64,000 nt of DNA from Rebecca billardiae RCC1528 (taxonomy: Eukaryota > Protista > Haptophyta): assembly GCA_965240325.2 (NCBI GenBank), contig OZ251224.1:2604001-2668000 (forward strand), in the 5' to 3' direction. The notes beneath the pieces were generated by a model. The model was not told where the DNA came from. It did no database searches and worked only from the letters and a program-made list of their open reading frames with translations. Both the position numbers and the translations under genes were made by a program. Shown here piece after piece: positions 14,710 through 51,557 of this stretch (positions are counted from its first letter, which is position 1; each line of letters begins with the position of its first letter).

Positions 14710-17084
14710 CTAGCTCGGGCGCAGCATGAATCCAAAAAGCTCCGCGGCGCCACACAGCTCAAACCGCAGCCGCACACGCCGGCCGACGAGCGCAACATCA
14801 ATGCGCGGCGTGCTCGCTGCACCATCGCGGGGCTGCCAGTGCAGGACCACATCCACAGCGTCAGCGCTCTGCGCAGCAAGCGCCCGCTCGTGGCCGCCGA
14901 TCGGCTCAAGACTCGCATCGTCAATCAGCGCCGCGGCGAGGCTGCTCTCGAGACCGTGGTCGCTCAGAAGCGCGCGCGCGTTCACGCTCAGCACGCGATG
15001 CTGGTCCAGCAGCTCAAACGCCCGCGTCTCCAGCTGACCACACCGCGCGGTCGTGGTGGGGTGGGTGCTGTGGGACGCTGCCGGGGCGGCGGGCACCGCC
15101 TGGCCGGTGCCGACCGAGGCTGCGTCAGCGCACGCTGGGTCGACGCGCACGCCCGCCAGCCTGTGCAGCGGCCAGCGCGCGCGCGCGATGGTCGCCGGCT
15201 TCCAGTAGCGATGGCTGTGCTGTGTCGGCCGCCCCTCGTAGTAGAGAACGTGCCCGTCCTCGCCGAGGGTGAGTAGCTCGGAGCTCGGCTCAATAAAGCC
15301 CGCGTCGAACTCGCACGCGAGGCTCGCGTGCGGTGGGGTGGCTGCCGCTCCGGGTGGCTGCGAGGCGACGGCAGACGCGGGCCGACAGCCGCCGGGGTCG
15401 AGAATCGGGGCATCTGCATACACGGAGCTCAAGTCAAAGGTGCGCCCGCCGTCGCGCGTGGGCAGGGCAAACACGCTCATCGTGTCGAACCAGAAGGGCG
15501 GGCGCGCGTCGAGGCCGGGCGCGGGTTTGGAGCCCACGCCTGGCCAGTGCAGCACCGTGAGTAGCCCCACGCCCAGCGCGCCGCGTGCGGGCGCTGCGGA
15601 GCGCCTCGCGCGGCGCTGCTGCGGATGCGAGCGTGGCGCAGTGCCCGGTGCCGCCGCCGACGTCAGCCCATCGCTGAGCGTGAGCGAGTAGATCTGCCGA
15701 CGGTACCTCTCCGCCTTGCCCTCACGATCGAGGTACCACTCGCGGACGGTCTCAAAGGCAGCGGGCTTGGCGAGGAGGCGCGTGTTCCGCGCAACCACGA
15801 CGCCTCGCACGGCGCGCCACTGCGATTCCAACTCCTCGTTGCCAAAGCCCTGCGGTGCAAACGTGCGGCGCGGCGCAGATGCGGGCCGCGGCGTGAGCGC
15901 CGGCGCATCAGCCCCGGCGGTGGGTGGGGGGCGGGATTCGTGCGACGGAGCGCGGCTTGGCACGTGGGACGCGACGCGGCACGCACAACGCGCTTGATCA
16001 GCCAGTGCGCGCCGTCGGCAGCAGACCAGCGCACGCAGTTGTACGAGTCAGCGTGGTGCGCACACGGCGGGCCGCAGCACCCGCGCACCCTCTCGCAAGG
16101 GAGCGCCAGCAGCGAGCCGTTGTGGGGAGCGCGGCTGCCACCGCCGAGCGGGGACCAACGAGCGTCCGCGTGTGCGTTGGCCGGCGCGCTTGCGAGGCAC
16201 ACGGACTCTGCGAGGTTGCCGCAGTGGCGCCCCATCAGCAGCTTGCCGTGCGCCTCGTCGAGCGAGATACACATCTCCAGGCGCAGCCCGTGCACGCCTG
16301 TCTGCGTGAGGGGCGCCCACGCTAGCCCGTCGGCCGACTCGGTGTACCAGATGGTCTTCCTGCCCAGCCACATGCGATAGAGCGGGTATGCACGGCTGGG
16401 GGGAACCACTGACCCGTACATCGCGAAGTGGTAGGCGTAGCACCACTGCTCGTCTTCATTCTGAAGCCTTGCTGCGCACCACGCGCGCACTGCGGGCGTC
16501 GGGATGTGCAGCACCCTCCTCTCCACGGGGCGGTGGTAAGAGCGGGCGATGCACGTGTGCCGGGCGATCGCATGGTCGTCGACGAGCCATTGCGCCTCAC
16601 CCGGCTGCGGCGCGAAGGGCAAGCGGTGCAGCGAGCGGCGGTACTTTGCCTCAAAGCAGGAAGTGCACGTCCTCAGGTGCGCTGAGTCGACCTGGTATCC
16701 GTCGGGCCGCTTGAGCTGGTCGGGGTGAAATCGGATCGTGCCATTGCGGATGCGCTCCATCAGAAGGCGCTCGTGCGCGTGTGGCCTCCGTCTGCGCGGC
16801 CACGTCGGCACCGGTGTATGCACGCTCGACGCATCCGCCCATTCGCGAGCCACTGGAGCGTCTGCGGCTGAGTGCGTACTTCGGCCGGGCCATACGGCGA
16901 GCTCGGGCGGGACTCCAGCCATACCAGCCGCGCGCTCTCCCTGCCGCGCGCCGTGCGCGCGCCACCGCGGCTGCACAAGCGCGAGACACCATGCTGCAAG
17001 CAGCCAGCCAAATTTAAGCCGCACGCCCGCCGCCATTGTGAGCCCATGATACAATGGCGGCGCTACCATCGGCGACGGCTTCAT
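14710..17084 (-). CDS. Secreted glycoside-hydrolase-like beta-propeller protein; predicted exons 17084 (or 17036)-15987 and 15849-14710
   Basis: Signal-like N-terminus, Asp-box ESADGLAW, motifs QWLVDD, ADSYN, QIYSL, VLYYEG...H and IARARW. The intron 15850-15986 (GTGCGT...CCGCAG) joins the two ORFs in frame. Confidence 0.6.
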
Positions 17085-17148
17085 GGGCGGTGACAGTTGG
17101 CGGGCGTCAATCTCGCCTGCCTGAGCTGTGTGCGTCTCTTATTCTTAG

Positions 17149-17157
17149 TAAACTGTA
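17149..17157. repeat. Left target-site duplication TAAACTGTA
   Basis: Identical 9-mer at 34924-34932, immediately outside the other TIR. Confidence 0.97.
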
Positions 17158-17646
17158 GGGAAAACCCCGGAAGTCCGACGAGGACCGACCGAGCAACCAG
17201 AACTCCGACAAACCTCCGCATCTCAGCACGGCGATTTCCGGACTGGCACCCCCGCCAGTTTTCCGACGGCCAGAAGCTTCGGGAGCGAGCAAATGGCGCC
17301 GCTCGCCCGCAACGCGGAAGATACCGCTCGCGGCGAACCGGCGCGAACGCCCGCCTTGTATTCGGGCGGAGTACCCTAATGAGCGGGGGTGGGTACTTTC
17401 GTATTGCGCGCAGCCTGACGCCCACCCGCGACGAAACGACGCCGTCGACTCCTCCCGCCCGGACCGCCGCCGGAACGTTGCTCGTCAATTAGTTAGAGAA
17501 ATGCGACGCCGGGGGGCGCGCCGCAAAACTTGCTCCCGAGCTCGCCACGAGGGACGATCGATGCCTCGCACGACGTTAAGGGGGTACGCCTGCCACGCGC
17601 GCGGGCGTCGTGCGCGCGCCGCGTGGTCGCGCGCGGCGCATCGCGC
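17158..17646 (+). repeat. Left terminal inverted repeat of the MULE (489 bp)
   Basis: Reverse complement of 34435-34923 with no net indel. About 17 mismatches by eye, 11 of them in one 13-nt block. Confidence 0.95.
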
Positions 17647-20600
17647 GCGCGTGTGTCTTCGTTCGCGCGCGCGGCGTGCGCTCGCGCATGTCGTCACGCC
17701 GTGCGTTCTGCGTCGTTGCGCGGCGTCGTGCCCGCGTGCCGCGCGCAGGCCGCCGCCGCCTGCGGGGACGACTCCGACTGCGACGAGCTTCGCGAACGGG
17801 GCTGCTGTGGACGTGGTGTACGAGCAGGGTGCACCGGCAGTCCGTGCTGTGGTCGCGGCGCTTGGGGTCGGCGCACACGGGCGAGTGCAGACGTACGTCC
17901 TCCGGGCTGCCGAGGGAGTGTCTGCTCATGCGTGGGCTGCGGTCCCTGGCGACACCGTCGGTGCGTCCGCGGATGGAACAGTCGAGGGCGCAGGCTCGTT
18001 GAAGAGGGTGCCAGCGGCGCACGTGCGTGCGCCGCCCGCCGGCGAGCAGTGCGCCGAGCAGGGGCAGGGCGCCGAGCAGGGCGCCGAGCAGGGCGCCCTG
18101 CTCGGCGCCCTGCTCGGCGCCGAGCCGGGCGCCGAGCAGGGCAAGCAGGCCGCCGAGCAGGGCGCCGAGCCGGGCGCCGAGCCGGGCGCCGAGCAGGGCG
18201 CCGAGCAGGGCGCCCAGCCGGGCGCCGGGCAGGGCGCCGGGCAGGGCAAGCAGGCCGCCGAGCAGGGCGCCGAGCCGGGCGCCGAGCAGGGCGCCGAGCA
18301 GGGCAAGCAGGGCGCCCAGCCGGGCGCCGGGCCGGGCGCCGAGCCGGGCGCCGAGCAGGGCAAGCAGGCCGCCGAGCAGGGCGCCGAGCCGGGCGCCGAG
18401 CAGGGCGCCGAGCAGGGCGCCCAGCCGGGCGCCGGGCAGGGCGCCGGGCCGGGCGCCGGGCCGGGCGCCGAGCAGGGCAAGCAGGGCGCCGAGCAGGGCG
18501 CCGAGCAGGGCGCCGAGCAGGGCGCCCAGCCGGGCGCCGGGCATGGCAAGCAGGCCGCCGAGCAGGGCACCGAGCCGGGCGCCGAGCAGGGCGCCGAGCA
18601 GGGCGCCCAGCCGGGCGCCGAGCAGGGCGCCGAGCAGGGCGCCGACGGCCGGCCGGCCCGCCACGGCAGCACGCGCGTGGGCGGCGGCAGCTACGCCGCC
18701 CAGGGCATCCAGCAGGAGGCTGCGGGGCAGCGCGGCGCGCAGGGGGCGGCTCACCACAACGGGCGCGGCGGCGTGCGGACGCGGGCCATGCGCCGCCAGC
18801 CGCCACTTGCGCCACCCGCCGAAGCGCTGCCCGGCGTCACCTCGGCGCCGGCGCCGCCGTCGGCGCCGACGGCGGTCGCAGGCGTCACGGCGGCGCCGGC
18901 GGCGCCGCCTGCGGCCGCCGGCGGCCCCGCGACAAGCGACGAACGCGCCGAGCCGCCACGCGCACCCGTCGCAACGCTGGCGCCGGCGCCGGCGCCGCCG
19001 CCGGCGCCGACGGCGGTCGCCGGCGTCACGGCGGCGCCGGCGGCGCCGCCTTCGGCCGCCGGCGGCCCCGCGACAAGCGACGAACGCGCCGAGCCGCCAC
19101 GCGCACCCGTCGAAACGCTGGCGGGTGCCACCGGCGTCACCGCGGCGGCGCCGGCGCCGCCGCCTGCGGCCGCCGGCGGCCCCGCGACGCGCGCCGAACG
19201 CGCCGAGCCGCCACGCGCACCCGCCGAGGCGCCGGCGGCTGCCACCGGCGTCACCGCGGCGGCGCCGGCGCCGCCGGCGCCGGCTGCGGCCGCCGACGGC
19301 CCCGCGGGCGTCAACTCAGATGACGCCGGTGGTGCTGCCTCGGGCGAGGTGGCACGGGCGGCGACGGCGTCGACCGCGACGCGCGCCGAACGCGCCGAGC
19401 CGCCACGCGCACCCGCCGAGGCGCGGGCGGCTGCCACCGGCGTCACCGCGGCGGCGCCGGCGCCGCCGGCGCCGGCTGCGGCCGCCGACGGCCCCGCGGG
19501 CGTCAACTCAGATGACTCCGGTGGTGCTGCCTCGGGCGAGGTGGCACGGGCGGCGACGGCGTCGATGGGTGGAGCGGCGGCTGGCGCAGCGGGGTCGCAC
19601 TCCCATGCACCACAGCAGGCGCCCGCCGCCGCGCAACCCGGCGGTGGCGGCCACGCTGACGACGGCGGCGGCGTCTACGGCAGCGGCGACGGCGGCTCAC
19701 GCGAGCTGTTCGCGATGAGCGATGTCTTGCAGCACGTGGATCATTTCTTCAGCGGCATCTACGGGAAACGCCGGGGGTTCGGCGGAGACACGCCCGCCGC
19801 GCCGGCGCAGGCGCACGCGCACGTGCTGGTGCGCCCCAGCGCGGTGGCGGATGCGGACGCGCGGACGACGAAGCACGGGCCGCAACCGAACAACGGCCGA
19901 TTGGTGCCGGCCATCCTCAGGTTCAACCGCGCGTTCGCGTCACGGCATCTCGGCGGCGGCGGCGGCACGGTCCGCGTGGTGAACGTGGTGTGCGATGCCA
20001 CGAACAACAAGCACTTCGGCGTGCTCACGGATGCCGACGCTGTGCGCGAGCTGTGCGCCTCGGGCGCCTTGTACACGCGCAGCGAGGTGGACGATGCGGT
20101 GCGCGAGTTCTACGCCGGCGCCGCCGCGAGCGTCGGCGGCTCTGTCTCTGAGCTCGCCCTGCGCGCAGCAGGCGAGCACTTCGGTGTGCACGGCCCGTTG
20201 CCCTACGTCCTCGACGCGGACGTGCGAGTCGCCTTAGCGGACGCTGAGGCCGACGACGATGGCGTCGCAGGCGGCGACGCGCCCTGGGTTCACCGGGCGC
20301 TTGCGTTGCCCTCGATGCGGCGCTCGGGACAGGCGGTGTTCGGCCTCCCCGCCGTGGTTGCACAGGCGCCCTCCTGGTGCGCGCTTGTGCCCACGCCGCT
20401 GCGGGCGCCCGCTGAGCAGGGGACGTCGCCTTTGCTGCACGCCGCCGTGGCCGTGGTGGACTACCGGTCCGTGGACACCGACGACACCGACGAGTCGGAG
20501 CCCGTCGTCGGCGCGCACGCGTACGCCATCCGCTTCGAGAAGGGCTGGCGCCTCCTCACCTTCGCCACGCGGCCGCCCAGTGGTGCGGCGGGCGCGATGA

Positions 20601-23200
20601 CGGCTGCGACGTGCACGGACCTCACGGTCGACGCCTTCGCCGCCGCCGTCAGCCGGCGTGAGGTTGCTGCGTGCGAGCTGCAGTCAGCGCCGCCGCGGGC
20701 CATTGCGCCCCCCGTCCAGCACGCCGCCCCCGCGCTCCACGACTCGCCGCCCAGCCCGGACGAGACGGACGCGTTGCCGCCCCGCCCGCGCCGGGACGTG
20801 GTCCCGACGTCCACGGACGTGCTCATGGGCGCCTCCGCGGTGTGCAGCGCGCTCGGCATCGGGCCATGCCATTGGGCGCCCGATGGCGACCCGCCCGGGC
20901 TCATGACGAACGCCGCGGCCATCGCGGAGGCGGCGCTCACGTACGTGCAGTCGAACTACGACGTGATTGGGGGCACGGCGGCGTCGGCGGACCTGCTGCA
21001 CACGCTCCACCAGATCATGGTCGCCGGCCGCCCGCAGCGCTCGTTTGACAGGCCTCTCCCCCGGCCGGGCGGTGGGACGCGCGTGCGCGTCGCAGGCGTC
21101 GTCGGCGAGCTGCCCGTCCATGAACAAGAGCTGATGCTCGCCTCGAAGCACACGTGCGTCGCGGCGGCCATCGCGTGCGCCTCGGCGCTCGTGCTGCGCG
21201 TCAAGGCGGCACACCTGCGATACGACGCCCTCGCCGACGTCAGCGTGGGCGATGGTGCGTCCTTCGAGGCGGCGGACTACCTCACCAAGGTGCGCATCGT
21301 CAGCGCACGGCTCGTCGCGCCCGAGCGGAAGAAGCGGCTCACCTTCGAGCTCCTCGCCGTCTCCGAGGATAACGCCGGTGCTTACGACCGCGTGCTCAAC
21401 GCCGACACGAGCTCGCGGGCACTCCACCGGGACGAGGTGCTCGAGTTCACCTACGTGCCTTCGAAGACGCGCTCGTGGAAGTCGACGGAGGCGCTGTCAA
21501 CGCACAGCCGCGCGGCGGCCGGCGACGACGCCGACGCCGGCAACTTCGGCACGCTGTTCTTCGTCCCGCACATGCGCGACCCCGTGAAGGCAGCCGCCCT
21601 GGCGCGCCCGCCGCCTGCCGGGACGCCACCTGCCGCGCCGCCCGTGGGTGCGATTGTGGACTTTCGCCCCTTGTGCATCAGCGTGTGGGCTGACATCGTC
21701 CCGTTCTGCCAGGATCGGCTCTGGACGCACCCGGCGGACCCAGTCACCGGCAAAAGCAGCGGCGTGGACGCGCCGAAGATGTACGCCGCCGCGCTCCACA
21801 GGCGCGCGCCCTCGCTGGCGCGGCACGTACAGGCGGCGCCAGCGCGCAAGCGTCGCCTGAACGAACGCGGCGCCGACGCGGGCGGCGCGGGCGGCGCCGC
21901 CGGTGGGCGTGTGGTGGCGCGCCGGCCGGTCGGCGACCCGGGCCGCGTCGCCGTCACACGGCCATCCGCCGTCGCGCGCGCACCCGGGCCACCCGAACAG
22001 GCGACGCGCATGTGCACCGAGCTCGCTGCGGCCCACGCCCAGCTCGCTGAGATGGTGCACGGCATCCCCAACGCAATGGCACAAGCGATCGGACAACTCG
22101 CTGCGAACGACGCCAAGCGCCAGAAGGACTACGAGGCCTGGCGCGCGGCGGACGACGAGCGGCGCCGGCAGGAGCGCGCGGCGGACGAGGCCTGGCGCCA
22201 GCAGGAGCGCGCGGAGGCGGCGCGCCGACGCGACGAGGATCGCGCGGCCGCAATGAAACGTGACGAGATCGCGAGCGCGATGGTGGCGTCTATGCAGGCG
22301 TTGACGCAGTTCATGATGGACCGCAGCGCAGGTGGCGCACAGCCCGGCCCGCACGCGTCGGCGCACGCGGCGTGCGTCCAGCTGCCAACAGGCGAAGCAC
22401 CGCACGGCGCGCACGCCCCGGCTGCGGGCCCGTCGGTGAGCGCTGCGTCCGCTGCGCCCACGTCGCGCGCACCCACGGCACGGCGTGGCGCGCCGCCGCC
22501 GGTCGCATTCGGCCAGCGCGCGCGGCGCCGAGTGCCGCCCCCTGACTCGCGTGTGCCCGCCAGGCCGCTGCACTGTCGCTCCGTGCGCCGGCCGCGCAGG
22601 CCGACGAAGCCCCCGCGGGCCAGCCCCCGCCGGCCGCGCAGTAGACGCCGACCCACAAGGGCGCGTCCTGACGTGCCCACGCGCCGCCCACAGGTGCGCG
22701 CACACACCACATCGGGCGGCGCCAGCCGTGCGCACGCCGAGCGGCGTGTACGCGCAGCCCTGGCTCAGTCGCGCCCGACCGCCCCCGTGCGCGCGCGCGC
22801 GTCGCGGTGGCGTGCACAGGCTGCGCGCCACCCGGGGCGGCCACGCGGGTGGCCGCCACCGCTGGCAGCATCTGGCCACGAGCTCGGCACCCGGGGTGCC
22901 GGCGGAGTGGCTCGTCGGAATCGCCGTGGCCTGAGCCCGGTTCTCCGAGCACACGGCCACAGGCACCCCCCCGGCCAGCGCCTCTGCGCCACTCGCAGTG
23001 ACGGCGCCACAAGGGCCTACGGCGGGGCCCGCCGAGAAGGTCTTAGCGCAGGTCTTAGCGGGATGCAAGCAGCGCCACGCGCGACAACACTGATACACGC
23101 CGCCGGGGGCCCACACTGTGCCGGCCCGTGCTATGTCGTCGTCAGCTCGGACGCAGGCCGGCCGGCCGGTGCCGTGAGTCGGCGCCTGTCGTTCTGTTAG
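17501..23200 (+). CDS. MULE accessory protein (mudrB-like position) of unknown function; true 5' and 3' exon limits uncertain
   Basis: 1899-codon stop-free frame starting within the left TIR. Possible small beta-barrel (Tudor/SH3-like) at ~17790-18035, long repeats, globular region ~19700-21800 and a coiled coil at ~22010-22320. Confidence 0.7.
18050..18642 (+). repeat. Coding minisatellite built on a 12-bp GGCGCCGAGCAG unit ([16 protein letters not shown])
   Basis: Directly visible tandem array of about 590 bp with variant units. Confidence 0.95.
18844..19564 (+). repeat. Two pairs of near-identical coding tandem duplications (~140-bp and ~190-bp units)
   Basis: [16 protein letters not shown]...[12 protein letters not shown] occurs twice; [15 protein letters not shown]...[21 protein letters not shown] occurs twice. 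Confidence 0.9.
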
Positions 23201-26200
23201 CTGGCACCTGGCGTGCTCAGGCGGCGTGGTGCGCACTCAACGTACCCCTGCAAGGGTGATGTAGCTCGCATGAAGTGCGCCAGACGCCCCTCGTTGTTGT
23301 CGCGCGCCGAACGCGCCTCCAGGGGCGCCGTCGCCGACACCACCGCGCCGAAGTGGCAACGGCCGTCGTACACCACGGCCATCCACGTCGTGCCCAACTG
23401 CGTGACGTCCAGACGCTGCAAGGCGCGCCGCGTGCGCTCGTCACGCAGGCGCAGGTGCGCATGCGTGCTCACTGCGACGCTGCCCTTGCGCCCGCCGTCG
23501 TCAGTCCGCCGCCAGCGAAGGCCCGGCCGCGTCTGCACGGGGTAGAACCAGACGTTGTCGGTGAACGCGCGCCACGCCGCCTCCTCCGGCGTAGCCCCGC
23601 CGCGCAGCTCAAGGACCACCAGCGGCAGGCCCGTGGCGCGCGCCGTCGCGACGTGCGAGCCCCACGCCGACCACGCACCAGCGCGCGCCGCATGCGCGCC
23701 AGCGCCGTCGCCCGTGTACCGGGCGCCGCGCGCGTACGCGCGCGCCGCTGCTCCCAGCGTCCGCACGCCTCCAGTATGTCGCAGTGGCAGTGGCAGCACC
23801 TCCTGCCAGTCCTCGTCCTGCACTTCGAGTCCTTGGCCGGTGCGGGCCCGGGGGATGGATGCTGGCTTGACGCCAAGCATGCCGAGCGCGCTTGCCGCCG
23901 ACGCCGTGGCCGACGCCGTGCCGAGCGTCTCGCCCGGTCCGTGCTCGTCCTCCCACGACGCGATGTACGAGCACACGCCGTCGCGCAGCGTCTGCGCGCG
24001 CGCGTTGGCGGCGGGCAGGTCGGCCCGCACGCCACGCGTGTCGTGCGCGAGCCACGCGTGAAAGTAGCAGTCGCCATCGCCGGGAACGTCCTGCACGCTC
24101 GTGCCGCCGCCGAAGAGCTCGCGGATGGCCGCGGCGACGTTGCCGTCGCCATCCACGCCGCCGGGTGCTCCTGTCTGTGCACCAGCCCGCGCCTCGGGCG
24201 GCAACGCCGGCGGCAGGGGCAGCACGGGGAAGCCCAGGCGCTCGAGCAGGACCGCGGCGTCGTCCACCGGCGCGTGCACGTGTGCGGCGGCCGCCGGAGC
24301 CACCGCAGCCGGCGCAGCCCCGTGCCCGGCGGGCGCCGGCGCCGCCGCACCCGCGTCCACGGTGGCGTCCGTCGCCGCCGCGGCGCGCGGCGCGGCTGCG
24401 CCGCGTGGCGCGGCATCACCCGCCGTCACGTCAGCGCGGCATCGCTCCGCCGTCACGTCAGCGGCGGTCTCGCCCAAGGCCAGGCGCAGCCCCAAGCCCA
24501 CGTCGCACCGCCATGCCCCGTCGGAGCCGTCGAGAGGGACCACCTCGGTGCCGAACGCGCTCGGGTCCAGCGCATCCACCTCGCACCCGCGCCGCCTGGA
24601 CGCCAGCCTCACGTGCGCGTCCGCAGCCGGCTGGAACGCACTCCAGCGCGACGCCGGCAACACCCCGTGCGCGCGCGGGGTGGCCTGCGGCGCAACCACT
24701 GCGTAGAACTGCCGGCGAGGACACACGTTGCGCACGATGGCCACCCAGCCGGTGCCCATCGCCCCGACGTCGAGCGTGCGCAGGACGCGTGCGTGCGTCT
24801 CGCGTCCCAGGCTCAGGCGCGCTTCGCACAGCGGACGTGCGTCCGCGTGCGCGGCGCCTGCGTCGGGCGTGTCGGCGCGCCGGCGCTTCGCGCCGGCGCC
24901 CCCGCGAGCGCGTGGCGCCGCCGGCGCCGGCGGCACGCGCACTGCCGTCGGAGGATACCACCGCACGTGCTCACGCATGGCGACGCCGTGCACGTCGCGA
25001 GCTCGGCGTGCGTAGGCCATGTCGAAGACGAGGAGGTGCACGCCGGCGGCGCGAGCGACTGCCGCGTACCACTCAGGGCCATCGCACGTGTTGCCCGGGC
25101 TGCTGACGTACCCGTCGCACGTGTACTCCGCCGCTCGCACTGCCAGCGTCACTGCGTCGTCCAGATCGCGCACGCCCTGGCCGGGGGTGTGCCACGACGA
25201 CGAGTCGTCGGGGGCCACCATGCGCAGAGCCCGCAAACGCGCCTGCCCAGCTTCGTCGCCACCTGCGCTCTCCGGGGGAAGTGCGCGCACGTCAGCGCCG
25301 CACAAGCCGATGAAGCGCGCCTGCGCTCGCAGGTCCTCTGCCGACTCGGCCGGGCCCAGCGCGCCACCCCAGCCGACGGAGTGCTCGGTGGGCGTCGCAT
25401 GCGCGTGCGCGGCCAGCCACGACGCGGCCGCCGCGCGCAGGCGCCGCGCGCAGCACGCCCACCACAGGGCCTCAAGCGTGCTGGGCGGACGCGCCCGCGC
25501 GTGCGCGTGCGCGAGCACCGCGTGCAGCACGTCGTCACCGTCGGCTGGCACGGGCAACGGCTGTGCGGCGCCCGCGCCCCAGAGGTCGTCGAGCACTGCC
25601 TGGGCGCAGCACAGCCGTAATCGGGCGAATTCGGCGTCGTGGTCGTCTGCGCCGGCGGCGGCGTCGGCGGCGTGGAACAGGCGCACCGGCGCGTGGCGGT
25701 CATCGCCCGCGGCGCGCGCTCCAGCGTCGCGCACCGGCAGACCAGTGCGCGCCAAGTGGGCGACCGCGTCGTCCGCGGTGGCGACGGCTGTGTCGTCCGC
25801 GGCACCAGACGTGCCACGCGCCGTCCCCAGCAGGTCGGCGCCTGCGCGCGTTGGGCCCGGCGTCGGCACCGACCGCGCCGCCGACGATGGCCCCGCCGTG
25901 GACGCGCGGGCGCCCGCCGCCTGGCGCGAAGCCGGCGGCAGGCGCCCATCCGCGGCCGCACCGCCCGCGTCGTCGGCGGCGGCCGCAGTCCGAGGGCGCT
26001 TGGGCGCGCACGGCGCAGACGCGGCCCCCGCGCCCGCGCGGGAGGTGCCAGCCGCGGCGCCCGCCTGGCCTGCGGCGCCTGCGCCCGCGCCGCCGCCGCC
26101 AGCCAGGACGTCCGCCAGGCCCGCCGCCGCCGCCGCGACGTCGTGTGCGCCTGCGTGCGCCCACACGTGGGAGGCCGCGTTCGGAGCGGCGCCGCCCGAG

Positions 26201-29200
26201 CCCCTCGCGCCGCCACTGCCCTCGGCGGGCACGGCGGGCGACGCGTGCGCGCGCGCCAGCTCGGCGGGGGCGGCGGCGGCGCGCGCAAACTGTGCCAGCA
26301 CCTTGCCCGTCGTCGCGCTGGACGCGCCGAATGCGTCACCGGCCGTCTCGCTGAGCGTGGGCCACGGTGCTGACAGGCCGCGACTGCACATGAACATGGC
26401 TGCCCTGCCCCGACCGATGCCAGGTATGCGCTGCAACGCCGCGAGCACTGCGGCGCTGTCGTCAGCGAGGCGCGCGTACGCCGACTCGGACTCCGCCGCC
26501 TCCGCCGGTGGCTCTGCCGCGCCCGCGCGCGCCCGAGGGACTCGCGCACCCGGTGGCGGTGGCGCGTGGGCGCCGGGCCACGGGGGGCGGAAGGGATGCT
26601 CAGTCGCCGCCAGCGGTACTGTGTCGCCCGTGGCCGGCAGCGGCTCCGCGGCGTGCGCGCGCGCGCGCGCGGCGGGCGTCGTGCCGGCGTCCGCGCCACT
26701 GCGCGGGCCCGTCGTGCCCTCAGGCGGTGCGGCCGGCCGCTGCGTGGCGGCGTTTGGCATCGGTGCCGTCGCGAAGCCCATGCGTACGCCGGTGCCGCCA
26801 AGTGCCTGCGAGGCGATCGCGCGCGCGCAGTGCCGGCGCGGGCCGCCGCGCGCGCCCGCGCCCGCCGCGGCGGCGCCGTCGCGCGTCTGGGCGGCCGCCG
26901 GCTGCGCGCGCCCGGGCGCGGGCGCCGCCGCGCCGCGGCCCCCGCGGCCGCCTGCGCGGCCCCCGCGCGCGCCTGCGGTGCGCGCGGGGTCGCCGCGCGC
27001 GGCCCCACCGCCGTGCTGTCCGCGCATACGGTGGTATGGCACGTCCTCCGGCCTCGCGCCGCGCGGCCCGTCGGGCGCCGCCGCCTCGCCCGCCGCGGCT
27101 GCGCGCGCTTCGCGCAGGCGCTTCCACGCCCCCGCGACGAGCAGGAAGTAGCAGCACGTGCACATGTACAGCCCGCTGTCCAGCGCGCCGAGGTGCCACA
27201 CATACTTGCACTGCGCGGGCGAGTGGATGAAGCAGGCGCAGCCCTGGCACGCCAGTCGGGGGTCGATCGGCGGCGAGTCCGCCGGCCACGCCGCGCTGAG
27301 GTCCGCGGCCTCGGGGTCGAAACACGCGCAGCAGCGCAGTTGCGCGGCGGCGGTCGTGCCGGCCGTGTACGTGGCAAAGTGGCGACGTCGCTGGTTCGCA
27401 ACCACACCCTCGCGGAGCGGGCCGGCCACGCGCACGAGCACGTTAGTGTCGTCGAGCACGTGCGTGTGCGCGATGCCGTACAGGTGCTCCGGCAGCCCCT
27501 CGAGCACACGCGCGAGCTCGTCGCGGTGCGCTTCGCGCACGCGCCGGGCGAAGTCGCCGTCCGGGGCTTGCTCCCTCAAGGGGCGCACGTACGACGCCGC
27601 GGATTTGCCCAACTGCACGCGCGGCGCGCGCGCGCGCGGTGCGCGCGGGTGGCGCGCCCCGGCGCGGCCCTCCCAGAACGCCAGCCGTCGCGCCGAGGAC
27701 GCGGGCCTGCCCACGCGCGCGGGCACCGCTGGCATGGCCACGTACTTTTCGAGCAGGGCGCGCTTGGCGAGAGCGGGCAGCAGCAGAGCCGCAATGGCGT
27801 CCTCCAGGCGCTGGGGCGGTGTGATGACGTCGAGCTTGGTGATGGCCACGACGCGCCCGAGCGTGTCCACCCGGGTGTCGTTGGCGTCGCGCTCGACCCG
27901 AAGGCCCACCTGCGCGAACCACGTCTCGCAGCGCAGGTCCTGGGGCAAGCACGTGCCCATGGCACGGCCGACGGAGGTCGCCACGCGGCAGAAGTGCATG
28001 CACGGCAGGCGCTTGCGGCGCAGCAACGCGCAGCACCGGAACTCGTCGAGGTACACGTGGCGCGGCGCCGAGCCGTCCGTGGTGTTGAGCATGCGCAGGG
28101 CACCTGCGTGCGGCCCGTCGAGGACACGGTGCACTTCCACCTGAGAGAGCGTGCGCGCCGTGCTCACCTGCTGGCGCACGTATTCCAGGTGCCGTGGCGG
28201 CAACCCGTGCACCTCATCATCGGCGTCGGGCTTCAGGGCGTGGCGCACGGCGACGCTGCGGTGCGTCGCGTAGAGGCGAAAGAGGTTGTCGTGCAGGTCG
28301 AGCAGCATCCACACCGGGCCCTGCGCCTTGCGCACCGGCAGCAGCCAGTGCATGAAGGACTCCGCCGGCGCGGACGTCACGTAGCCGCGCAGGGACACCG
28401 GCGCGAAGCACGGGAAGAGCTCCTCGCGGGGGATGACGTCGAGGATGCGCTTGGCCGACTCTGGCATCTCCACCCAGGCGGCCTCCCACACCTCCTCGGT
28501 CAACGCGTCCACGCACGCGTCGAACACGCGCAGGATGGTGGGCACCTCGTTCGCCGAGTGTGCGTAGCCCGTGATGAAGGTCTGGCGCTTGTGGAACGTG
28601 CACAGGAAGAGGTGCCTGCGCGGGCACAGCAGCTTCCACGCGCCGCGCAGGCCCTTCTGGCCGTCCGAGATGGTGACGCCGTTGGGGTCGTCCCACACAG
28701 CCGCCCCGCCGAGGTGCTGCATGAGGTATCCGACGTGCGCGCACCACGAGTCCAGGCACTCCACGTCGACGATGTACGACACGCACAAGACGAACAGCTG
28801 CCGGTTGGCGTTCACGGCCAGCGTGACGAAGAGCATGCCTGCGTCGCGCGCGTGCGTGCGCGCGGGCAGGTCAGACGGGCGGGCGCTGAGGCGGCACGGA
28901 CGCACGCGGCGTCGCGAGGGCGTGCCCGGGTGCGGCGGGCGCGCGCACCCGCGCGCTTCGCGCCACCGCTGGCGGGGCGGTGCAGGAAGCACGCGTCGCT
29001 GAACGCGGCCGTGTTGCCCTTCGCGTGAAAGTGCTCGCGGTAAAGCGCCTTGGCCTGCTTGGGCACGTAGTGGAAGCCACCCACTGCCTTCTTGCCGCGC
29101 ACGTCAGCCAGCGCCTTCTGCACCTCCGCCGCGTCGGGGTTGAAGGCCGCGCGCTGCGCGCCCGCCGGCAGCCCCTGCTGCACCTCGTCGTGCACGCGGC

Positions 29201-32200
29201 CGAACATGGCCAGCAGCGCGTCCTCGACCGAGTTCTCGTGGAAGATGATGGGCGCGACCTCGTTGCCCTCCTGCGACAGCGACGCGCACACGGCCACGAG
29301 GTCGCGCGACATGGCCGTGTCGTCCCCATAGATCTCGGCGCGCGCTTCTTTGTGCGCTCGCGCGATGAGCGATTCACCCATGGGGAGCTCTGCGTCCAGC
29401 TGGCGCGCGACCTCTCGTGCTTGCTGCGGGCCGTAGCACAGCTGCGCGTGCGTGGTCCCGCGCCGGGCCAAGCGCGCCTTCCAGTCCTCGACGATCGCCC
29501 GCCCGAGCTCGTGTTGGGAGTACGGCGTCGTGCGCACGCCCGGCTGGTTGGTCGGGCGCGGCAGCGAGCCGATGGGGTGTTCCTCGGACCCCTTGCCCAT
29601 GCGCAGGTTGCGGCACATGGAGCCGTGCGCGACCGAGCGTTGCACGGCCCACGGCGGCGCGCCAAACGTGTCCACGTACTTCGACGGGCCCACCACCACC
29701 ACGGACGGGCACCCGGGCGTGGGGCATCCGATCGTCAGCTTGGCGCGGTCGACGCGCCGCGTCGGCGGCATGGCCCCCCGGTGCAGCGCGCACTCCGAGG
29801 CGTGCGTGAGCGCGTCGGCGAGGCGCGGGTACACCTGGCGCACCATCGGGGGCTCGAGCAGGGTGGCGTCCGCCTTCACCTGGGAGTACGGGCGCGGCGC
29901 CCGCAAGCCCATTTTCCTCCACAGTGCCAGGGGCCGGAGCTCGAGGCGGTGCGCTGCCGCCGACGTGCTCGCCGAGGTGCTCGACGGCGCGGAGTAGCGG
30001 AAGTACCCGGCGTCACCGCCGTGGTGCAGCGACTCCGGCGCAACAAGCCGGGCGCCGGCCTGGCCGGCGCGGGGCTCGGCGGGACCGGTGGAGGGCGGCT
30101 GCGCGCGAGCGACGATGGGTGGACACGGCATGAGGGCAGCCAGCGGGTCGCGCGCGCGAGCGGCGTCGCTGTCGGCGGACTCGTCCGCCTGCAGTGCCGC
30201 CTGCGCCGCGCGCGCGCGGGCGTCCGCGCAGTCGTCGTCCGCGATGCCCTCCTCCCAGTCGCGCACGTCGATGGCGGCACTGGCGGGATCGGCGTCCGTG
30301 ACGAGCGGCTCGCCGCGGGCGTCGGACTCGCCGACGCGCATCGTCGGCCAGTCCGCGCTCAGGGCGAACAGCGGCGCGTTGCCGCGGGCGGCCGCCGTCG
30401 TGTGCGTCCTATGGCCCACGGACGCGTCGACGAGGGGCACTCCACCGCGCGCCCATGCGGGCGCCGACTTCTCCGTCGCCAACGCGTCGGCAAGGTGGCC
30501 ACCGAGGTGGGCACGCTGGCCGGCGTGCAGGGCCAGGGCGAGGTCCCCGCCGGACAAGAGGCCACCTGCGTGCGGCAGCGCAGGGAGGGCCCTCAGCCGC
30601 GCGTCGTCGTCGTCATTGCCGCCGTCGCCACCGGAGGCGCCGCGCGGCTGCGGCGGCGCGCGCGAGGCGCAGCCGGGCGGCTGCGCGATCACCGCGCGCG
30701 CGCTGCTGCTGTCGAGGGGCGGCCCCGCCGGGTGGAGTGGCGGGCGCGCCGTCGCGGCGCACACAGCGGCGCCGGGCACCGTCACCGCGACGCAGGGCAC
30801 GGCGTCGCCCGCAGCGCAGGGTGCGCCCGGCGCTGGCGTTGCCACGCGAGCGGGCGAAGAGTGCCCATCGCCAGGCCGCGGCGACGCGGGCTCGTGCGCG
30901 CCCGGCGCGTCCGAGCTCGAGCTTTGGCGGGCGCCGGTGTGCCGCAGCGGGGCGGACGCTGCGTCGGGGCGACGCACGGCCGTGGGCGCGCGCGGCCCGA
31001 CAGCCGGGTCGTCAACGCCATCGGCGCGTGGGGGCCGCGCGCCCTCGTCAAAGGGGGCGCCCACGTGCGCGCCCGTGCCGTGCGCGGCCGCGGCGGTGGG
31101 CGCGCGCCCACCGCCGTCGGCGTGAGGCGCGGGGTGGCCGCCCGCAAGCCCCACGACGTGGGGCACGGCAGGCGCCGCTGCGCGCTCATGTGCGAGCTGC
31201 GCGCCGTCGGCAGCGCACACGGGCAGCGCCAGCTGCAGCGCCGACTGCGCCCAGGCCCGCTGCTCGTGGTCCGACGGCGCCTGCTGGCCGTGCGCCGCGG
31301 TCGGCAGGTCGACCACCAGGCGGGAGACGTACTCGTGGTGCGCAGGCGAGCCGAGCCGGAAGCGGGCGTCAGCGCCAGCGCGCGTGGGCTCAGCCCCCCA
31401 GCGCAGCCTGGTCTCAAACGAGTGCTGGAGCCCGCGCTCGAGGGCGGGCACGAGCCGATACGGCGTGGGAGGCGGGTCGGAGCGCGCCGCGCACGGCGTG
31501 GCGGCGGGGCGAGGCGCGCTCGGCGGCGGCGTGAACGAAGCGCGGAATGTGTCCGCGAGGCCCCGCCCCCCGAATGAGAACACAGCCTTCAGGACGAGCG
31601 CGTCCGCCGCACCCTGACGCGTAGGCCTCTTGCGCGAGGACGACGGCACGGACCCCGAGGACGCGGCGCGCGCACTGGGGGCCGAGCGGTGATGCCACAT
31701 GGCGGGGAAGATGTGCACTGCACCTGCGCTTTCCTGCAGGGCAACGTCGCCGTGCAGCGGCACGGCGTCGGCGCGCGCACCGGGGGGGCGCGCGCCGACC
31801 GTCTGCAGCGGGAAGGGATTGGTGGGCACACTTTGCGGCAAGTGCAAGAGGACCACTGCCGTCCACAGATGGTCCTCGTCGGTCGTGCCGTCGACGTGCC
31901 ACCCGTACGTCGTGACGTCGCCGTCGTCGCACGTGCCGCGGCCCCCGTCGGGCGGACGCATCGGCCGCCCGAAGACATGCCAGGCCGTGAGGTCGAGCGC
32001 GTCGAGGCCGCGGACACCGTCAGAGGCGTCGCCGCGGAACAACGAGCTCACGACGCCCTTCAGCGCCGCCACCACGCGCTCAAAGGCGCGGCACCCCAGC
32101 ACCGAGCGCGCAGAGGAGCCGTGGTCGCCCACCCCCCAGCGCCGCTGCGCGGCCGCCTCGCCGCCCGCGTCCGCGGACTGGTACGCGTGCACCGTGCGCA

Positions 32201-34103
32201 GGAGGCCGCCACCCTCATCCAGCAAGGGCATGGACGCATCGCCGTCCCCGCCGAGGCCTGCGTGCTGCAGCACGTACTCGCGCAACGGGCCAACCAGCAC
32301 GCCCATGTCCATGTCCAAACGCTGCGGTGCCGCAGCGGCGGCACCAAACGCGGCCTGCAGCGCGCGCCCAACCGCGGTGTTATGCGCGAGCATGTCGTCG
32401 AGGCTGGGCGCGGGCGCCGCCGCAGGCGTCGGCGCCAGCGCGTCGCCCAGCGGCGGCTCGCCTGCAGGCGGCAGCGCGCGCGGCACCACCACGGCGGAGG
32501 CAGGGCGCATCGCGCCCGACGCCGCGCTCGTCACCTCGTCGCGCCACGGCGCAGCGGCGCCCACGACAGCGTGCGCACCGCACAGCGTCAGCACCAGCGT
32601 CACTGGCGGCTGCGAGACGGCCGCGCCGGCCACGAGGGCCTGCGCGAAGGTGGCGTCGAGCAAGGGGTGCAGACGCGCGCCCTCGCCGACGTGCACCAGC
32701 GCGGGCGCGAGCGGGATGACCACTGCCCACACGGTGCGCTCGGCGATGGTGGAGGCGGCCCGCAGCAACGGCCGCGCCAGCCACCCTTCGCGCAGCGAGC
32801 CGTCCTCGCACGCGGCCACAAAGGCCGCAAGACCGGCGTGGCCGTCGGCGACCACGGCAGCACGCAGCCTGACGGCGGCTGCGCGCACGGCGGCGTCACG
32901 TCCAGCGGCGGCGCCGGACGTGGCAGCGCGCGGCGCTCCATCTGCCGCCACCCCTTCGCCGGCCCCCACGACGGCCTGCGAGACGGCGCCGAGCCACGCC
33001 AAGCGGGCGCTCTCGAGTTCCGCACGCAGCTGCTGGTCGCGCCAGCGTGCCTGCTCAGCCGACGCGGGAACGAACGCGCGCGGCTGCGCCGGCACGGGCG
33101 CGCAGAGCGCGCGTACGGCAGCGTACGCCTGCGTGCGCAGCTCCGCCGCTCGCGCACGCAGCGCGTCCGCGCAGAGGCTGCTGCGGCCTGCTGGCCACGA
33201 CGCCACGCGCTCGAAGGCGACGAACAGAGGCTCGGACTGGCCAGCGTCCGCGCCGAAGACGGCGCGCGCGTAGTACATCACCGCCTCGGACGGGCATGAC
33301 AGCGGCGGGCACGGGGGGGGCGCGCCCGTCCAAGCGCCCGACGGCGCCGCCGCCGCCGCCGTCGTCGCCGGGAGCACGTCGTCGACGCCTCCGCCAGTCC
33401 CAGCACCTGGGCGGGCATCCGGACGGGGGGCGCACAACGCCGCCAGAGCCAGCTTCGTCCGGAACGGAGCGGCGGCCCAGGCCGCACGCACTGCCCACGC
33501 GCATGCGCCCTGCGCGTGCTCAGCGGCGCGTGCGTGCTGCCCTGGGGTCGGCGCCGAGGACGACGGCGACAGCGACTCCGCGCCACCCGAGCGGCGCGCG
33601 TGGGACGTGCCTGCGGGCGGCGGCGCCGGTTTCCCTCCGAGCGCCGCTGCGGACGCCGTCAGTCGCGCCGTCTCCGCGAAACTGCCCTCCTCCGCCAGAG
33701 CCCCGTCGGCGGAAGCACCACAGGCAGCGCGCACGGCGATCTGCGCGACGGCCCTGAACCAAAGGGCCGCCGCGCACACGCGCGCCACCGAGTCCGCGCG
33801 CTCACGCAGCGCGTCCGGGTGCGAAGCCAACAACTCCGCACACTCCACCACAGTGAGCAGCGCGTCGGCGCCGCTGCCACCCCATACGCGCGGCACTGTG
33901 ACCTGCGCGGCGGCGGCGCCAAGGCCCACGTCGGTGCTGTGGACCACGCCGAGGGTGCACAGCACCAGACCAAAGGTGAACGTCCACGGGGCTGCTGCCG
34001 AGGAGAACTGCAGCGTGCACAACGCGTCGTCAGCCGCTGCGATCACCGCGTCCACGAGCAGCAGGTCGTCCTGACTGCTGGGGCCGGCGGACACATGCCG
34101 CAT
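23197..34103 (-). CDS. Multidomain MULE transposase (~3,600 aa): 2OG-Fe(II) oxygenase-like, MuDR Zn-finger, DDE, SWIM, PHD, HhH, pseudo-OTU, OTU; predicted exons 34103-28949 and 28838-23197
   Basis: Intron 28839-28948 (GTGCGC...ACGCAG, phase 1) joins the two ORFs inside the catalytic domain: SDACFL...GMLFVTLAVNAN...ISDGQKGL...CTFH...AESF. SWIM RCC...LPCMH at ~27990-28040; PHD at 27151-27333; LQRIPGIGRGRA at ~26400-26440; PGDGDCYFHA at ~24060-24085 with CHFGAV at ~23345-23358. An upstream exon is possible (acceptor-like site at 34110). Confidence 0.88.
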
Positions 34104-34434
34104 GCCCGCCTGCGCGGTACGTGCCAGCACGTGCGGCGGAGAGGCAAACGCAGGCGCGCGCGAGCACACACACGGGGCACATCGTCAGACAGGGGACGGG
34201 GGCGCATGGGAGTGGTGCGGTGTGCGCGCGCGCGGCGGCGCACGCCACCAACATCGCTGCCGACCACACACACCCGCCCCGGCCCACCGCGACCTCGCAC
34301 CATTCACGAATCACGAGTGCGACTTGCCTGCTCGTCGCGGCCGGCGACCGTCGACGCCTCAGACCGACTCGGATGCGAGAAGGGGGAACTCCTGCGAGGG
34401 GAGGCCGCAGGGAACAAGAACGGTCGGTGCGTGT

Positions 34435-34923
34435 GCGCGATGCGCCGCGCGCGACCGCGCGGCGCGCGCACGACGCCCGCGCGCGTGGAAGGCGTACCCC
34501 CTTAACGTCGTGCTCACGCCCAGCCCTCCCTCGTGGCGAGCTCGGGAGCAAGTTTTGCGGCGCGCCCCCCGGCGTCGCATTTCTCTAACTAATTGACGAG
34601 CAACGTTCCGGCGGCGGTCCGGGCGGGAGGAGTCGACGGCGTCGTTTCGTCGCGGGTGGGCGTCAGGCTGCGCGCAATACGAAAGTGCCCACCCCCGCTC
34701 ATTAGGGTACTCCGCCCGAATACAAGGCGGGCGTTCGCGCCGGTTCGCCGCGAGCGGTATCTTCCGCGTTGCGGGCGAGCGGCGCCATTTGCTCGCTCCC
34801 GAAGCTTCTGGCCGTCGGAAAACTGGCGGGGGTGCCAGTCCGGAAATCGCCGTGCTGAGATGCGGAGGTTTGTCGGAGTTCTGGTTGCTCGGTCGGTCCT
34901 CGTCGGACTTCCGGAGGATTCCC
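34435..34923 (-). repeat. Right terminal inverted repeat of the MULE
   Basis: Reverse complement of 17158-17646. Confidence 0.95.
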
Positions 34924-34932
34924 TAAACTGTA
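34924..34932. repeat. Right target-site duplication TAAACTGTA
   Basis: Matches 17149-17157. Confidence 0.97.
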
Positions 34933-35277
34933 CTACTAATAGTAGTATCGCTTCATAATCCCGACGAAATCTGGCCAGCGCACCCGGCCGGGGCCGGGGA
35001 AGGTGGCTGTTCGGCGTCCCCGGCCTCGGCTCCCGCCGTGGCGCGGTGGCGGACTGATCGGCCACTCGGTGTTGACCCTAGTCCCACCCTAGTCCGCACG
35101 CATCAGAGCGCGCGCTGGCTGACTCGCCCACCGCCGCGGCTGACACGCCCGCTGCGCTGCCCGGACGGTGACTGTCCTGTTTGGAAGAGTGACTGCACTG
35201 GCTGGGGAGTGTGCTGCGATGGGGAGTCGCTCGGCGAGCGACTGTACCAACGTGATTGACCGCCCGGACCCCGACAT

Positions 35278-35480
35278 CCGAGCGCAGAACCTGGCCATGT
35301 GTCGTTCGCTGTCCGCCTCCTGATGCGTTCAGCCCGCCCTGCGCGGCTCGGGCCGGCTTAGAACCCATCGCTTCCATGCTCATCTGAGAGAGAACCCTCG
35401 TGTGCAGCGAGCTCATGGGAGGACGACCCCAGCACACGCATGACAAGCCATCGGGCCAAGCCAGGTCTACTCCGCTTGAC
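35278..35480 (+). repeat. Dispersed repeat, copy 2 (partner at 13718-13946)
   Basis: Collinear shared blocks in the same orientation as copy 1. Confidence 0.85.
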
Positions 35481-35861
35481 GGGCCCGCGCCGCGGCCACC
35501 GCGCGTCCGCCATGAGCGCATGTCCGCCATCATGTGATGAGCCAGCCGGGCGGGCGGAATCTTCCGCAGCTCGCCTTTGACGGTTTGACCGCCGCGTCGG
35601 TCCGTTGCTTCACCGAAGCGTGACAACAAGCAGGCACACGCGCGGCAAGCAGCGCGCGGAGTGGGGGGTGCGCACTGCGTAACTGCCGTAGTCTCGACGC
35701 CCGGTGCCGCTCGCCACCGGGACCCGGGTGGGCGTGAGCGTGAGTGAGCGTGTGACCGAGAGTGGCGGAGTGCGCACCACGCGCACGCGCTGGACGCCTT
35801 GGCAACGGCCGCGCGGACGGGACGAGCTGAGGGGCGGGATCTCGAGATCGCCGGTGTTGCC

Positions 35862-36924: not shown

Positions 36925-37690
36925 GCCGATCCTGAATCCTGATGCCGATGGAAACTCCCCGCGCCTGCGGTCGTGGCCCGCGGTCGCGGCCCGCTGGCGC
37001 TGATCAGCTGGCCGTCAACGTGCAGCCGCCGCACCAAGCAGACTTGTGAACGCGCGGCGGCCGGCATACGACTTTAAGTCAGTAGCACTGCAATCGTCGA
37101 TCGATATCGCCGTATCATTATTATTTAATCCATTATGTATCATGCATCAATATATATATGGTTCCACGCCCACGGCCGGATGTCATGTTGAGGTTAGTAT
37201 GTGGACGAACGGTACAATAGGCAGTTGGCAATGTCGTTAATATGAGTCAGAGTCGCAGTGAGTAATGTACTAGTTCAATGCGGGTAGGTCGCTCGCAAAC
37301 GGCGGGGAATCGTCAATGTCCACTGTCCAGATTGACATCTCGCTCGCCGGTCCGGCTGTGGATCCGGACTTTGCCTTTTTCAGCTAGCGGCAGCGAGGTC
37401 CTCGGTCGCACGGGTCGCGCCGGCTCGTTTGGGCCGCCTGCCGGAGCTGGGCCACCGGGGCGGACGCGGGCTTGTTGTGCGCGGTACAGGCGTGCCGGGT
37501 ACGTCTAAGCGCTCTGCGCTCGTGACCTTGCGCCACGCGGCAGTCGGGCGCCGCGCGACCACCGCGCGCGCGCGCTCGGTGCGGGTGCAGTGGGTGACGT
37601 GCGCCAGCTGCCACCTGCCACCTGCCTGCTGCGCGCCCCCCTCCGCGCCAGCAGGGCGTGCCGAGAGTCGGCCGCCTCGGCTGGGTGGCA

Positions 37691-51502: not shown

Positions 51503-51505
<3 letters not shown>

Positions 51506-51557
<52 letters not shown>
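51506..51557 (+). repeat. Poly-G tract (52 nt)
   Basis: Uninterrupted G homopolymer flanked by further G-runs. Confidence 0.9.

Follow-up and report, generated by a model that had tools for sequence, protein, structure and literature searches.

Maize MuDR is about 4.9 kb long and encodes a transposase of about 820 amino acids (aa). Mutator-like elements (MULEs) as a group are defined by a target site duplication (TSD) of 8–11 bp and by terminal inverted repeats (TIRs) of 14 to more than 500 bp (PMC6446971); arthropod MULEs measure 1.4–10 kb (PMC13359780) and a full-length rice MULE about 7 kb, with transposition said to become less efficient once the cargo exceeds about 6 kb (PMC6431247). Large and protease-carrying precedents are found in the 'monstrous MuDR-like' VANDAL20 elements and the Ulp1-MULEs, and the Hydra element MuDR-6_HM carries an OTU motif (PMC2836005, PMC6446971). 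Here we describe a 17.8-kb element located, with its TSDs, at positions 17149–34932 of a stretch of contig OZ251224.1 (Rebecca billardiae RCC1528, assembly GCA_965240325.2, positions 2,604,001 to 2,668,000 of the forward strand). This whole stretch of 64,000 nt is referred to below as the window, and all coordinates are given within it. The element is very probably an autonomous, structurally intact cut-and-paste MULE/MuDR transposon, inserted between divergent host genes of a very GC-rich eukaryote, on sequence evidence probably a haptophyte-like alga.

Comparison with described elements

Like MuDR, the element has a Mutator DDE transposase, a 9-bp TSD, long TIRs (about 0.2 kb in MuDR) and two convergent genes with start codons inside or close to the TIRs, and its SWIM-like motif recalls the finger of MuDR. 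Unlike MuDR, it is 17.8 kb long, its transposase lies within a polypeptide of about 3,592 aa, and the two transposase cores are very distant from one another. The convergent layout and an ATG in the left TIR are present, whereas the plus-strand gene, open reading frame (ORF) 1, is similar to nothing searched and has no detectable homolog; kinship to mudrB is not expected. Convergence of the genes characterizes maize MuDR without being a defining property of MULEs; a preliminary description of this locus had listed it among the features that define MuDR-type elements. That description had also called the element unusually large and its family possibly undescribed, and both points were borne out: at 17.8 kb it is about three times the usual size (against the 1.4–10 kb of arthropod and the ~7 kb of full-length MULEs), and no public protein set searched contained a close relative. 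Among MULEs it stands out for its own length and for that of its protein, but large and protease-bearing MULEs have precedents.

The KI-MULEs and VANDAL20 of Arabidopsis and the Ulp1-MULEs of hydra, lancelet, maize, rice and melon carry a cysteine protease for ubiquitin or ubiquitin-like proteins, and some of them are very large; the likeness is one of architecture and not of demonstrated sequence relationship. Their protease is mostly Ulp1 (C48), usually encoded by a separate gene, and their hosts are plants and animals, whereas the present element, in an alga, has two tandem OTU-like modules, one of them apparently dead, fused to the transposase C-terminus. With the Rehavkus elements of insects and annelids, likened here by description and not by sequence, it shares a 9-bp TSD, long TIRs and an extra Cys-rich finger (PMC6446971). 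In Rehavkus a minisatellite lies just inside the TIR, on the 3' side of the transposase gene (PMC6446971), and a minisatellite is similarly placed here. The differences are that the Cys-rich module of the present element has no PHD match, that its minisatellite is in-frame coding sequence of ORF1, and that the hosts are unrelated. The DDE plus CxxH signature recalls Muta1 of Aedes aegypti, the source from which we extrapolate a cut-and-paste mechanism (PMC5499845); Muta1 is small and has a single gene, unlike the present element, which is known from sequence alone.

Long TIRs and a perfect 9-bp TSD bound the element

The limits of the TIRs were set by global alignment of both ends, and a repeat search was run over the window. 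The element proper occupies 17158–34923 (17,766 bp, 75.8% GC), and its TIRs are about 494 nt long, a length that essentially agrees with the 489 bp given previously. The left TIR (17158–17651, plus strand) begins GGGAAAACCCCGG and contains the ATG of ORF1, and the right TIR (34923–34427, minus strand) begins GGGAATCCTCCGG when read as the reverse complement. The repeat search returned two pairs of inverted arms, 17140–17554 with 34527–34941 (415 nt, 98% identical) and 17568–17651 with 34430–34513 (84 nt, 95%). Only four mismatches fall in the outermost 397 nt of the TIRs, and tip positions 6, 7 and 9, where GGGAAAACCCCGG and GGGAATCCTCCGG differ, account for three of these; further in, a 13-nt patch that could not be aligned is followed by 84 nt at 95% identity. 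A 41-nt TIR probe occurred exactly twice in the window (0 expected), and a TIR 24-mer had no match in metagenome or viral contigs. Subterminal repeated motifs showed no enrichment in the TIR over shuffles.

Directly outside both TIR tips we found TAAACTGTA, a direct repeat identical at 9 of 9 positions (17149–17157 and 34924–34932), as the preliminary description had reported. With the boundary fixed, the probability of a chance match is about 4e-6. A TSD of 9 bp lies within the 8–11 bp, and TIRs of ~494 nt within the tens to hundreds of bp, that characterize MULEs. The reconstructed empty site reads ...CTCTTATTCTTAG-TAAACTGTA-CTACTAATAGTAG.... Bounded by these TIRs and this TSD, with uninterrupted ORFs and retained catalytic residues (see below), the 17.8-kb element is structurally intact, in keeping with what was first proposed.

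Three long ORFs occupy the interior

The interior is taken up by ORF1 on the plus strand (17501–23200, 1899 codons as a raw ORF, its ATG inside the left TIR) and by two ORFs on the minus strand, ORF2 (23197–28992 raw, 1931 aa) and ORF3 (28812–34169 raw, 1785 aa). Because long stop-free frames arise by chance at 76% GC, we tested both ORF length and codon-position composition. The longest stop-free run is 2013 codons, whereas 200 dinucleotide-matched simulations averaged 663 and never exceeded 1286, and GC content at the third and second codon positions (GC3 0.85–0.96, GC2 0.45–0.65) is periodic in exactly the frames of ORF1, ORF2 and ORF3. Two stretches are exceptions: the tail of ORF1 (see below) and an Ala/Gly/Pro/Arg-rich linker in ORF2 (~25500–27000), in which the periodicity is weak. 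The stops of ORF1 and ORF2 overlap by 2 nt at 23197–23200 (T-TAG). Of the earlier picture, in which two stop-free convergent units fill the interior, the convergence and the near-complete occupation remain; the units are refined to three ORFs, the two on the minus strand being joined by a predicted intron.

No similarity was detected between the element and the rest of the window or between one ORF and another, and Rfam gave no match on the window. The full-length ORFs had no match in Pfam, the weak MULE match described below coming from sub-pieces only, and the element ORFs had none in PHROGs or NCBIfam.

The transposase core falls inside the Mutator superfamily

The D, D, CxxH and E residues of the transposase are all intact and aligned with invariant columns. 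The first Asp lies in the D1 motif AAFSDACF (ORF3 aa 1721–1728; 28986–29009, on the minus strand like all features of this gene) and is conserved in 8 of the 8 relatives that cover it. The D2 motif is ISDGQKG (ORF2 aa 108–114, 28651–28671), whose D, K and G are invariant in both alignments inspected (A1 and A2); between D2 and E, C and H are invariant in the CxxH motif CTFHK (28588–28602), and the catalytic Glu is invariant in PAESF (ORF2 aa 209–213, 28354–28368). A SWIM-like zinc finger, CC-x10-C-x-H (CCALLRRKRLPCMH, 27994–28035), aligns with the CC..PC.H of the relatives, a GRP motif downstream of the DDE domain is shared with them, and a Cys-rich module (CCAC...C-x-GC-x-C-x-IH...C-x2-C, 27145–27333) is conserved in P0004, P0005, P0007 and L005. 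The finger of the window protein had no direct Pfam SWIM match, and two relatives, P0011 and P0014, came just under the SWIM cut-off (19.1 and 19.4 bits, cut-off 19.6). For the Cys-rich module there was no Pfam match, PHD finger included.

The piece just downstream of the intron matches PF10551 (MULE) at 17.3 bits (E=0.007) over profile positions 16–95 of 99. The intron divides the domain, which keeps the score under the cut-off of 27.6, and a match starting at profile position 16 fits the first ~15 positions lying on the upstream exon. The 429-residue core served as query in an exhaustive phmmer search of 1.84 billion representative proteins (E<=1e-3), which yielded only 17 relatives, the best at E=3.8e-28, with 27–31% identity. 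In an alignment that includes the window's own piece, 12 of 17 sequences match PF10551 and 10 of 17 match PF00872. Three relatives pass the Pfam MULE cut-off (P0011, P0013 and P0014, at 30, 59 and 49 bits), P0014 passing Transposase_mut as well, and phmmer relates these three to the window core at database-wide E values of 8e-7 to 1e-4. When the window and its 7 closest relatives were compared with MULE proteins by hhalign, the probability was 100% (E=6e-44, 295 columns), the match running from just after D1 through the zinc finger. A locus search with alignment A4 returned only two short loci, and the core had no relative in prokaryotic genome contigs. Together, Pfam, the phmmer relatives and hhalign place the DDE domain inside the Mutator/MULE superfamily, where it had been put from the outset, and on these comparisons the core is an isolated new branch of that superfamily and not a new kind of element.

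The closest relatives, 27–31% identical, form an environmental MULE clade (P0001–P0007, with loci L001–L005). They share with the window protein ISDGxKG, FxCxxHK, TSSxAES, the CC..PC.H finger, GRP and the CCAC...IH module, and in them, too, the parts on either side of D1 are collinear, with a change of frame or a gap where the window has its intron. Transposases of this clade are normal-sized (~490–614 aa where complete) and end in a CCHC knuckle, after which P0004 terminates at 614 aa. Neither N-terminal extension, OTU tail nor ORF1 partner was detected in the clade, and the 2.4–3.1 kb of sequence upstream of L003 and L005 held nothing similar to the extensions. As the relatives are normal-sized, the giant architecture is particular to this element or to a close unsampled family. 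L001, L003 and L005 lie on environmental contigs of 58–66% GC and belong to this Pfam-marginal MULE clade; they probably come from other GC-rich protists.

A predicted intron joins ORF3 to ORF2 within the DDE domain

ORF3 and ORF2, which lie in different frames, share positions 28812–28992, and a GT..AG intron of 128 nt, in phase 1, is predicted at 28839–28966, where it interrupts the DDE domain between D1 and D2. The splice joins '...AAFSDACFLHRPAS' to 'G-MLFVTLAVNANRQ...', and a second possible donor 18 nt downstream (28948/28947) is also phase-compatible. The spliced model aligns unbroken across the junction with P0008 (query 201–624) and with P0015 and P0017 (261–523). In L001, L003 and L005, three environmental loci independent of one another, the pre-D1 and post-D1 halves are collinear and 65–110 nt apart; they switch frame at the intron site in L001 and L003 and stay in one frame, ~100 nt apart, in L005. 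From the continuous alignment at the junction and the collinear split halves we take the intron to be real and its position to be probably old.

From the first in-frame ATG (34101–34103) to the stop codon at 23197–23199, the spliced coding sequence measures 10,776 nt, or 3,592 codons. The upstream exon (28967–34169, the ORF3 part) encodes the N-terminal extension, the conserved pre-DDE region and D1, and the downstream exon (23197–28838, the ORF2 part) encodes the rest of the catalytic core (D2, CxxH and E), then the SWIM-like finger and the Cys-rich module and, beyond a low-complexity linker, two OTU-like modules. No relatives of the N-terminal ~1,590 residues were found in Pfam, in a word-index search with ORF3 aa 600–900 or among PDB sequences. 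Within this region 'WHVDG ... VHIFPAMWHHRS' (31660–31901, ORF3 aa ~757–835) resembles, by eye, the HxD...H iron-binding motif of 2-oxoglutarate-Fe(II) dioxygenases. The stretch had no Pfam or PDB sequence match and no homologs, and a single-sequence AlphaFold2 model of ORF3 aa 630–905 was unusable, with a predicted local distance difference test (pLDDT) score of 36, and lent the dioxygenase idea no support. An ATG identical to that of ORF1 is also present in the right TIR (34580, minus strand), in the frame class of ORF3 but with 3 stops intervening; a TIR-encoded first exon common to both genes may be spliced onto the transposase gene.

Two OTU-like modules lie at the C-terminus

The last 334 residues of the transposase gene product form OTU-like module 2 (23200–24201), assigned at the level of motifs. 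It contains VPGDGDCYFHAWLAH, with Cys, and about 240 residues later GRCHFGAVV, with His, and the order and form of these motifs are those of the OTU catalytic Cys (DGxC[FY][FY]H) and His motifs. Module 1 (24553–25635, ~360 residues) is its paralog; the two are 29% identical across 167 aa (E=3e-7) and 32% identical when aligned in full. In module 1 the corresponding motifs are VPADGDDVLHAVLAH, with Asp for Cys, and PRRQFYAVV, with Gln for His, so that both presumed catalytic residues are lost and the module is probably a catalytically dead duplicate.

The OTU-like piece had no Pfam OTU match. In the PDB, module 2 matched only the nairovirus L N-terminal chains 7y5m_A and 11ny_A, the region of the viral OTU protease domain, at a sub-significant E=0.1, and a two-row profile of both modules matched only EschOTU (6w9s_A) at a sub-significant E=0.62; in both cases the match was at the Cys motif. 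PDB sequence searches with the ORF1 core, the ORF3 N-terminus and the remainder of ORF2 found nothing beyond these faint OTU matches, and an AlphaFold2 model of the OTU module from a two-row alignment was uninformative (pLDDT 33). The term 'OTU-like' denotes a consistent lead at motif level and not a demonstrated domain.

ORF1 is a convergent gene without detectable relatives

GC3 periodicity is strong in the core of ORF1 (~19500–22350) and gone over its last ~280 codons (22350–23200, ~850 nt), a tail that is probably a stop-free run through the GC-rich 3' region. Since periodicity is lost from ~22350 and the stops overlap, these last ~280 codons may be non-coding, and the 3' end of the gene is uncertain. 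Towards its 5' end ORF1 contains a 12-nt in-frame minisatellite of ~52 copies that encodes (G-A-E/Q/P-Q/P-G) repeats (18043–18645), followed by in-frame, Ala/Pro-rich tandem repeats of 141, 114 and 192 nt (18843–19565). A word-index homology search with the ORF1 core (aa 700–1560) found no relative among 5.8 billion proteins, and ORF1 had no match in Pfam, PHROGs, NCBIfam, PDB sequences or viral contigs. In-frame low-complexity repeats of 9–12 nt also occur in the host subtilase gene (57436–60756), at 59077–59435 and nearby, and coding minisatellites like that of ORF1 seem to be common in the host genome.

Insertion site and mobility

The element lies inside a ~2.3-kb spacer between a minus-strand ORF (14713–16047) and a plus-strand ORF (36121–36921), and its target is an AT-rich 9-mer within flanks of 64–68% GC. 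A Logan genomic contig (L006, ERR14847148) corresponds to 35299–40821 of the window with 98.5% identity over 5.5 kb and stems from a strain or species closely related to the host. This contig ends 367 nt from the element, short of the insertion site and exactly at the edge of a dispersed repeat. No sequence in the public protein sets was more than 31% identical to the element core or to the ORF3 piece. This suggests, short of proof, that the element is absent from the 98.5%-identical strain. That the element is young and probably still mobile, as first proposed, has indirect support only: TIR identity does not date cut-and-paste elements, and a single copy is visible. Recent mobility of the element is plausible. 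The dispersed repeat itself occurs at 35299–35480 and 13738–13946, with 74% identity over ~209 nt.

Proposed mechanism and alternative explanations

By extrapolation from Muta1 (PMC5499845) and MuDR, the transposase would bind the TIRs and excise the element as double-stranded DNA, and reinsertion with a 9-bp staggered cut, followed by repair, would generate the TSD. Transcription of both genes would start in or near the TIRs and converge on 23197–23200. The C-terminal OTU-like module may act as a deubiquitinase or as a self-processing protease, on ubiquitin-type modifiers or on the giant protein itself; such protease roles have been suggested for Ulp1 and OTU domains carried by other transposons (PMC2836005). 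ORF1 may have an accessory role comparable to that of mudrB, without being its homolog.

Several observations weigh against an autonomous and intact MULE. The window protein itself is below the Pfam MULE cut-off, so that its membership comes from transitive and profile evidence, and its closest relatives are only 27–31% identical and themselves Pfam-marginal. The window holds only one copy of the element, whose autonomy and current activity are deduced; three mismatches fall at the very tips of the TIRs; and the 3' end of ORF1 is uncertain. ORF1 and the N-terminal 1,590 residues are without detectable relatives, and the roles given to them are guesses, while OTU support is at motif level only (E=0.1–0.6), with predicted folds at pLDDT 36 and 33.

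A first alternative is a cargo-laden or chimeric MULE, in which only the central ~650-residue transposase is ancestral and ORF1, the N-terminal extension and the OTU tail are captured host sequence, fused in frame by transduplication in the style of Pack-MULEs and without a role in transposition. We consider this unlikely, though far from negligible. Gene capture is known for MULEs (PMC6446971, PMC6431247), the relatives are normal-sized (P0004 with 614 aa, L003 and L005 without trace of the extensions), and the codon usage and GC3 of the element match those of host genes; against this, no paralog of the element ORFs was found elsewhere in the window or in public proteins, and the coding sequence is complete, long and in frame with sustained GC3 periodicity, unlike the short pieces of genes usual in Pack-MULEs. 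Where other MULEs carry a protease domain, or have one fused to them, it is moreover thought to be functional (PMC2836005). Of similarly low likelihood is an intact-looking relic, single-copy or silenced, or a near-domesticated element that no longer transposes. The perfect TSD, the ~99% identity of the TIRs, the three uninterrupted ORFs and the retention of every catalytic residue speak against such immobility, as does the fact that domesticated MULE genes are without TIRs and TSDs, and the apparent absence from the 98.5%-identical strain, whose contig starts 367 nt away, would mean recent gain or loss. In favour of immobility are the one copy seen in the 64 kb, the three tip mismatches, the extreme length and low-complexity content of the protein and the lack of a matching protein in any transcriptome-derived set searched.

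Another large TIR element (Polinton/Maverick, CACTA, hAT or KDZ/Zisupton) or a virus-derived insertion is very improbable and effectively refuted. TSDs are 6 bp long in Polintons and 3 bp in CACTA elements, unlike the 9 bp found here. The family matches are to Mutator models only, Pfam, PHROGs and NCBIfam gave no polymerase, integrase or capsid signal, and viral contigs contained no relatives; in its favour are the resemblance to Polintons in length (17.8 kb) and in long TIRs, and the occurrence of 16–20 kb CACTA elements in a red alga (PMC6431247). A Polinton/Maverick in particular was rejected on the lack of protein-primed polymerase B, retroviral-like integrase and capsid in these three databases and on its TSD length. 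An assembly artefact or chance inverted repeat is scarcely credible: nothing specific points to one, apart from the reliance on a single window, while the interior is unique, is not palindromic and carries coherent genes, the perfect 9-bp TSD stands exactly at the TIR tips, and the TIR is absent elsewhere in the window.

Starting from the structurally intact MULE that we favour, a bolder reading, speculative and in our judgement rather improbable, is that it is the first member of a 'giant-protein' MULE lineage in GC-rich algae, a still mobile element with a ~3,600-residue multi-domain transposase and a relative-less partner gene, whose additional domains aid transposition or oppose silencing by the host instead of being passive cargo. 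The partner gene may then encode 1,600–1,900 residues, an enzymatic domain may lie within the N-terminal 1,590 residues of the transposase, and the end of this protein may carry a dead and a live OTU-type deubiquitinase; the element may also be polymorphic between 98.5%-identical strains. If active, the element would rank with the largest MULEs that move autonomously by cut and paste, and its transposase polypeptide would be by far the longest of any MULE, implying that Mutator machinery can move ~18 kb in nature and tolerates fusions of very large size. The recurring association of DNA transposons with cysteine proteases of the ubiquitin type would also gain a case from an alga, probably a haptophyte, and an active MULE might serve as an insertional-mutagenesis tool for algae in which genetic tools are scarce. 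Two large protein regions of unassigned function come with the element, which leaves transposon classification unchanged.

Neighbouring genes and other repeats in the window

The proteins encoded around the element are of ordinary eukaryotic kinds and include a beta-carbonic anhydrase, a Sec16/WD40 protein, IGPS, a TM2 protein, an adenylate kinase, PP4R3 and a subtilase, and the GC3 of these flanking host genes is similar to that of the element. The closest named relative of the PP4R3 protein is from the coccolithophore Scyphosphaera apsteinii (44% identity), with green algae at 37–39%. A GC content of ~70% for the window is in keeping with Pavlovales-type haptophytes, which we note as a lead. 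The D. lutheri genome has 73.25% GC, and the paper describing it gives long terminal repeat elements and long interspersed nuclear elements as the main repeats, with MULEs unmentioned (PMC8379373).

A second long inverted repeat is present at 47537–48436. Its arms (47557–47890 and 48085–48418) are 334 nt long, 99% complementary and 194 nt apart, and they reach ~20 nt further across a poly-G tract of differing length. It has no clear TSD and no similarity to the TIR of the element, and may be a non-autonomous TIR or foldback element. The surrounding region, 46424–56305, contains five copies of a ~300-nt repeat (81–96% identical) together with companion repeats, at a lower GC content (60–62%). 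C-type lectin domains (PF00059) are encoded by the minus-strand ORFs 49580–50218, 50654–51136 and 53417–54070, and the region is a tandem cluster of lectin-domain genes.

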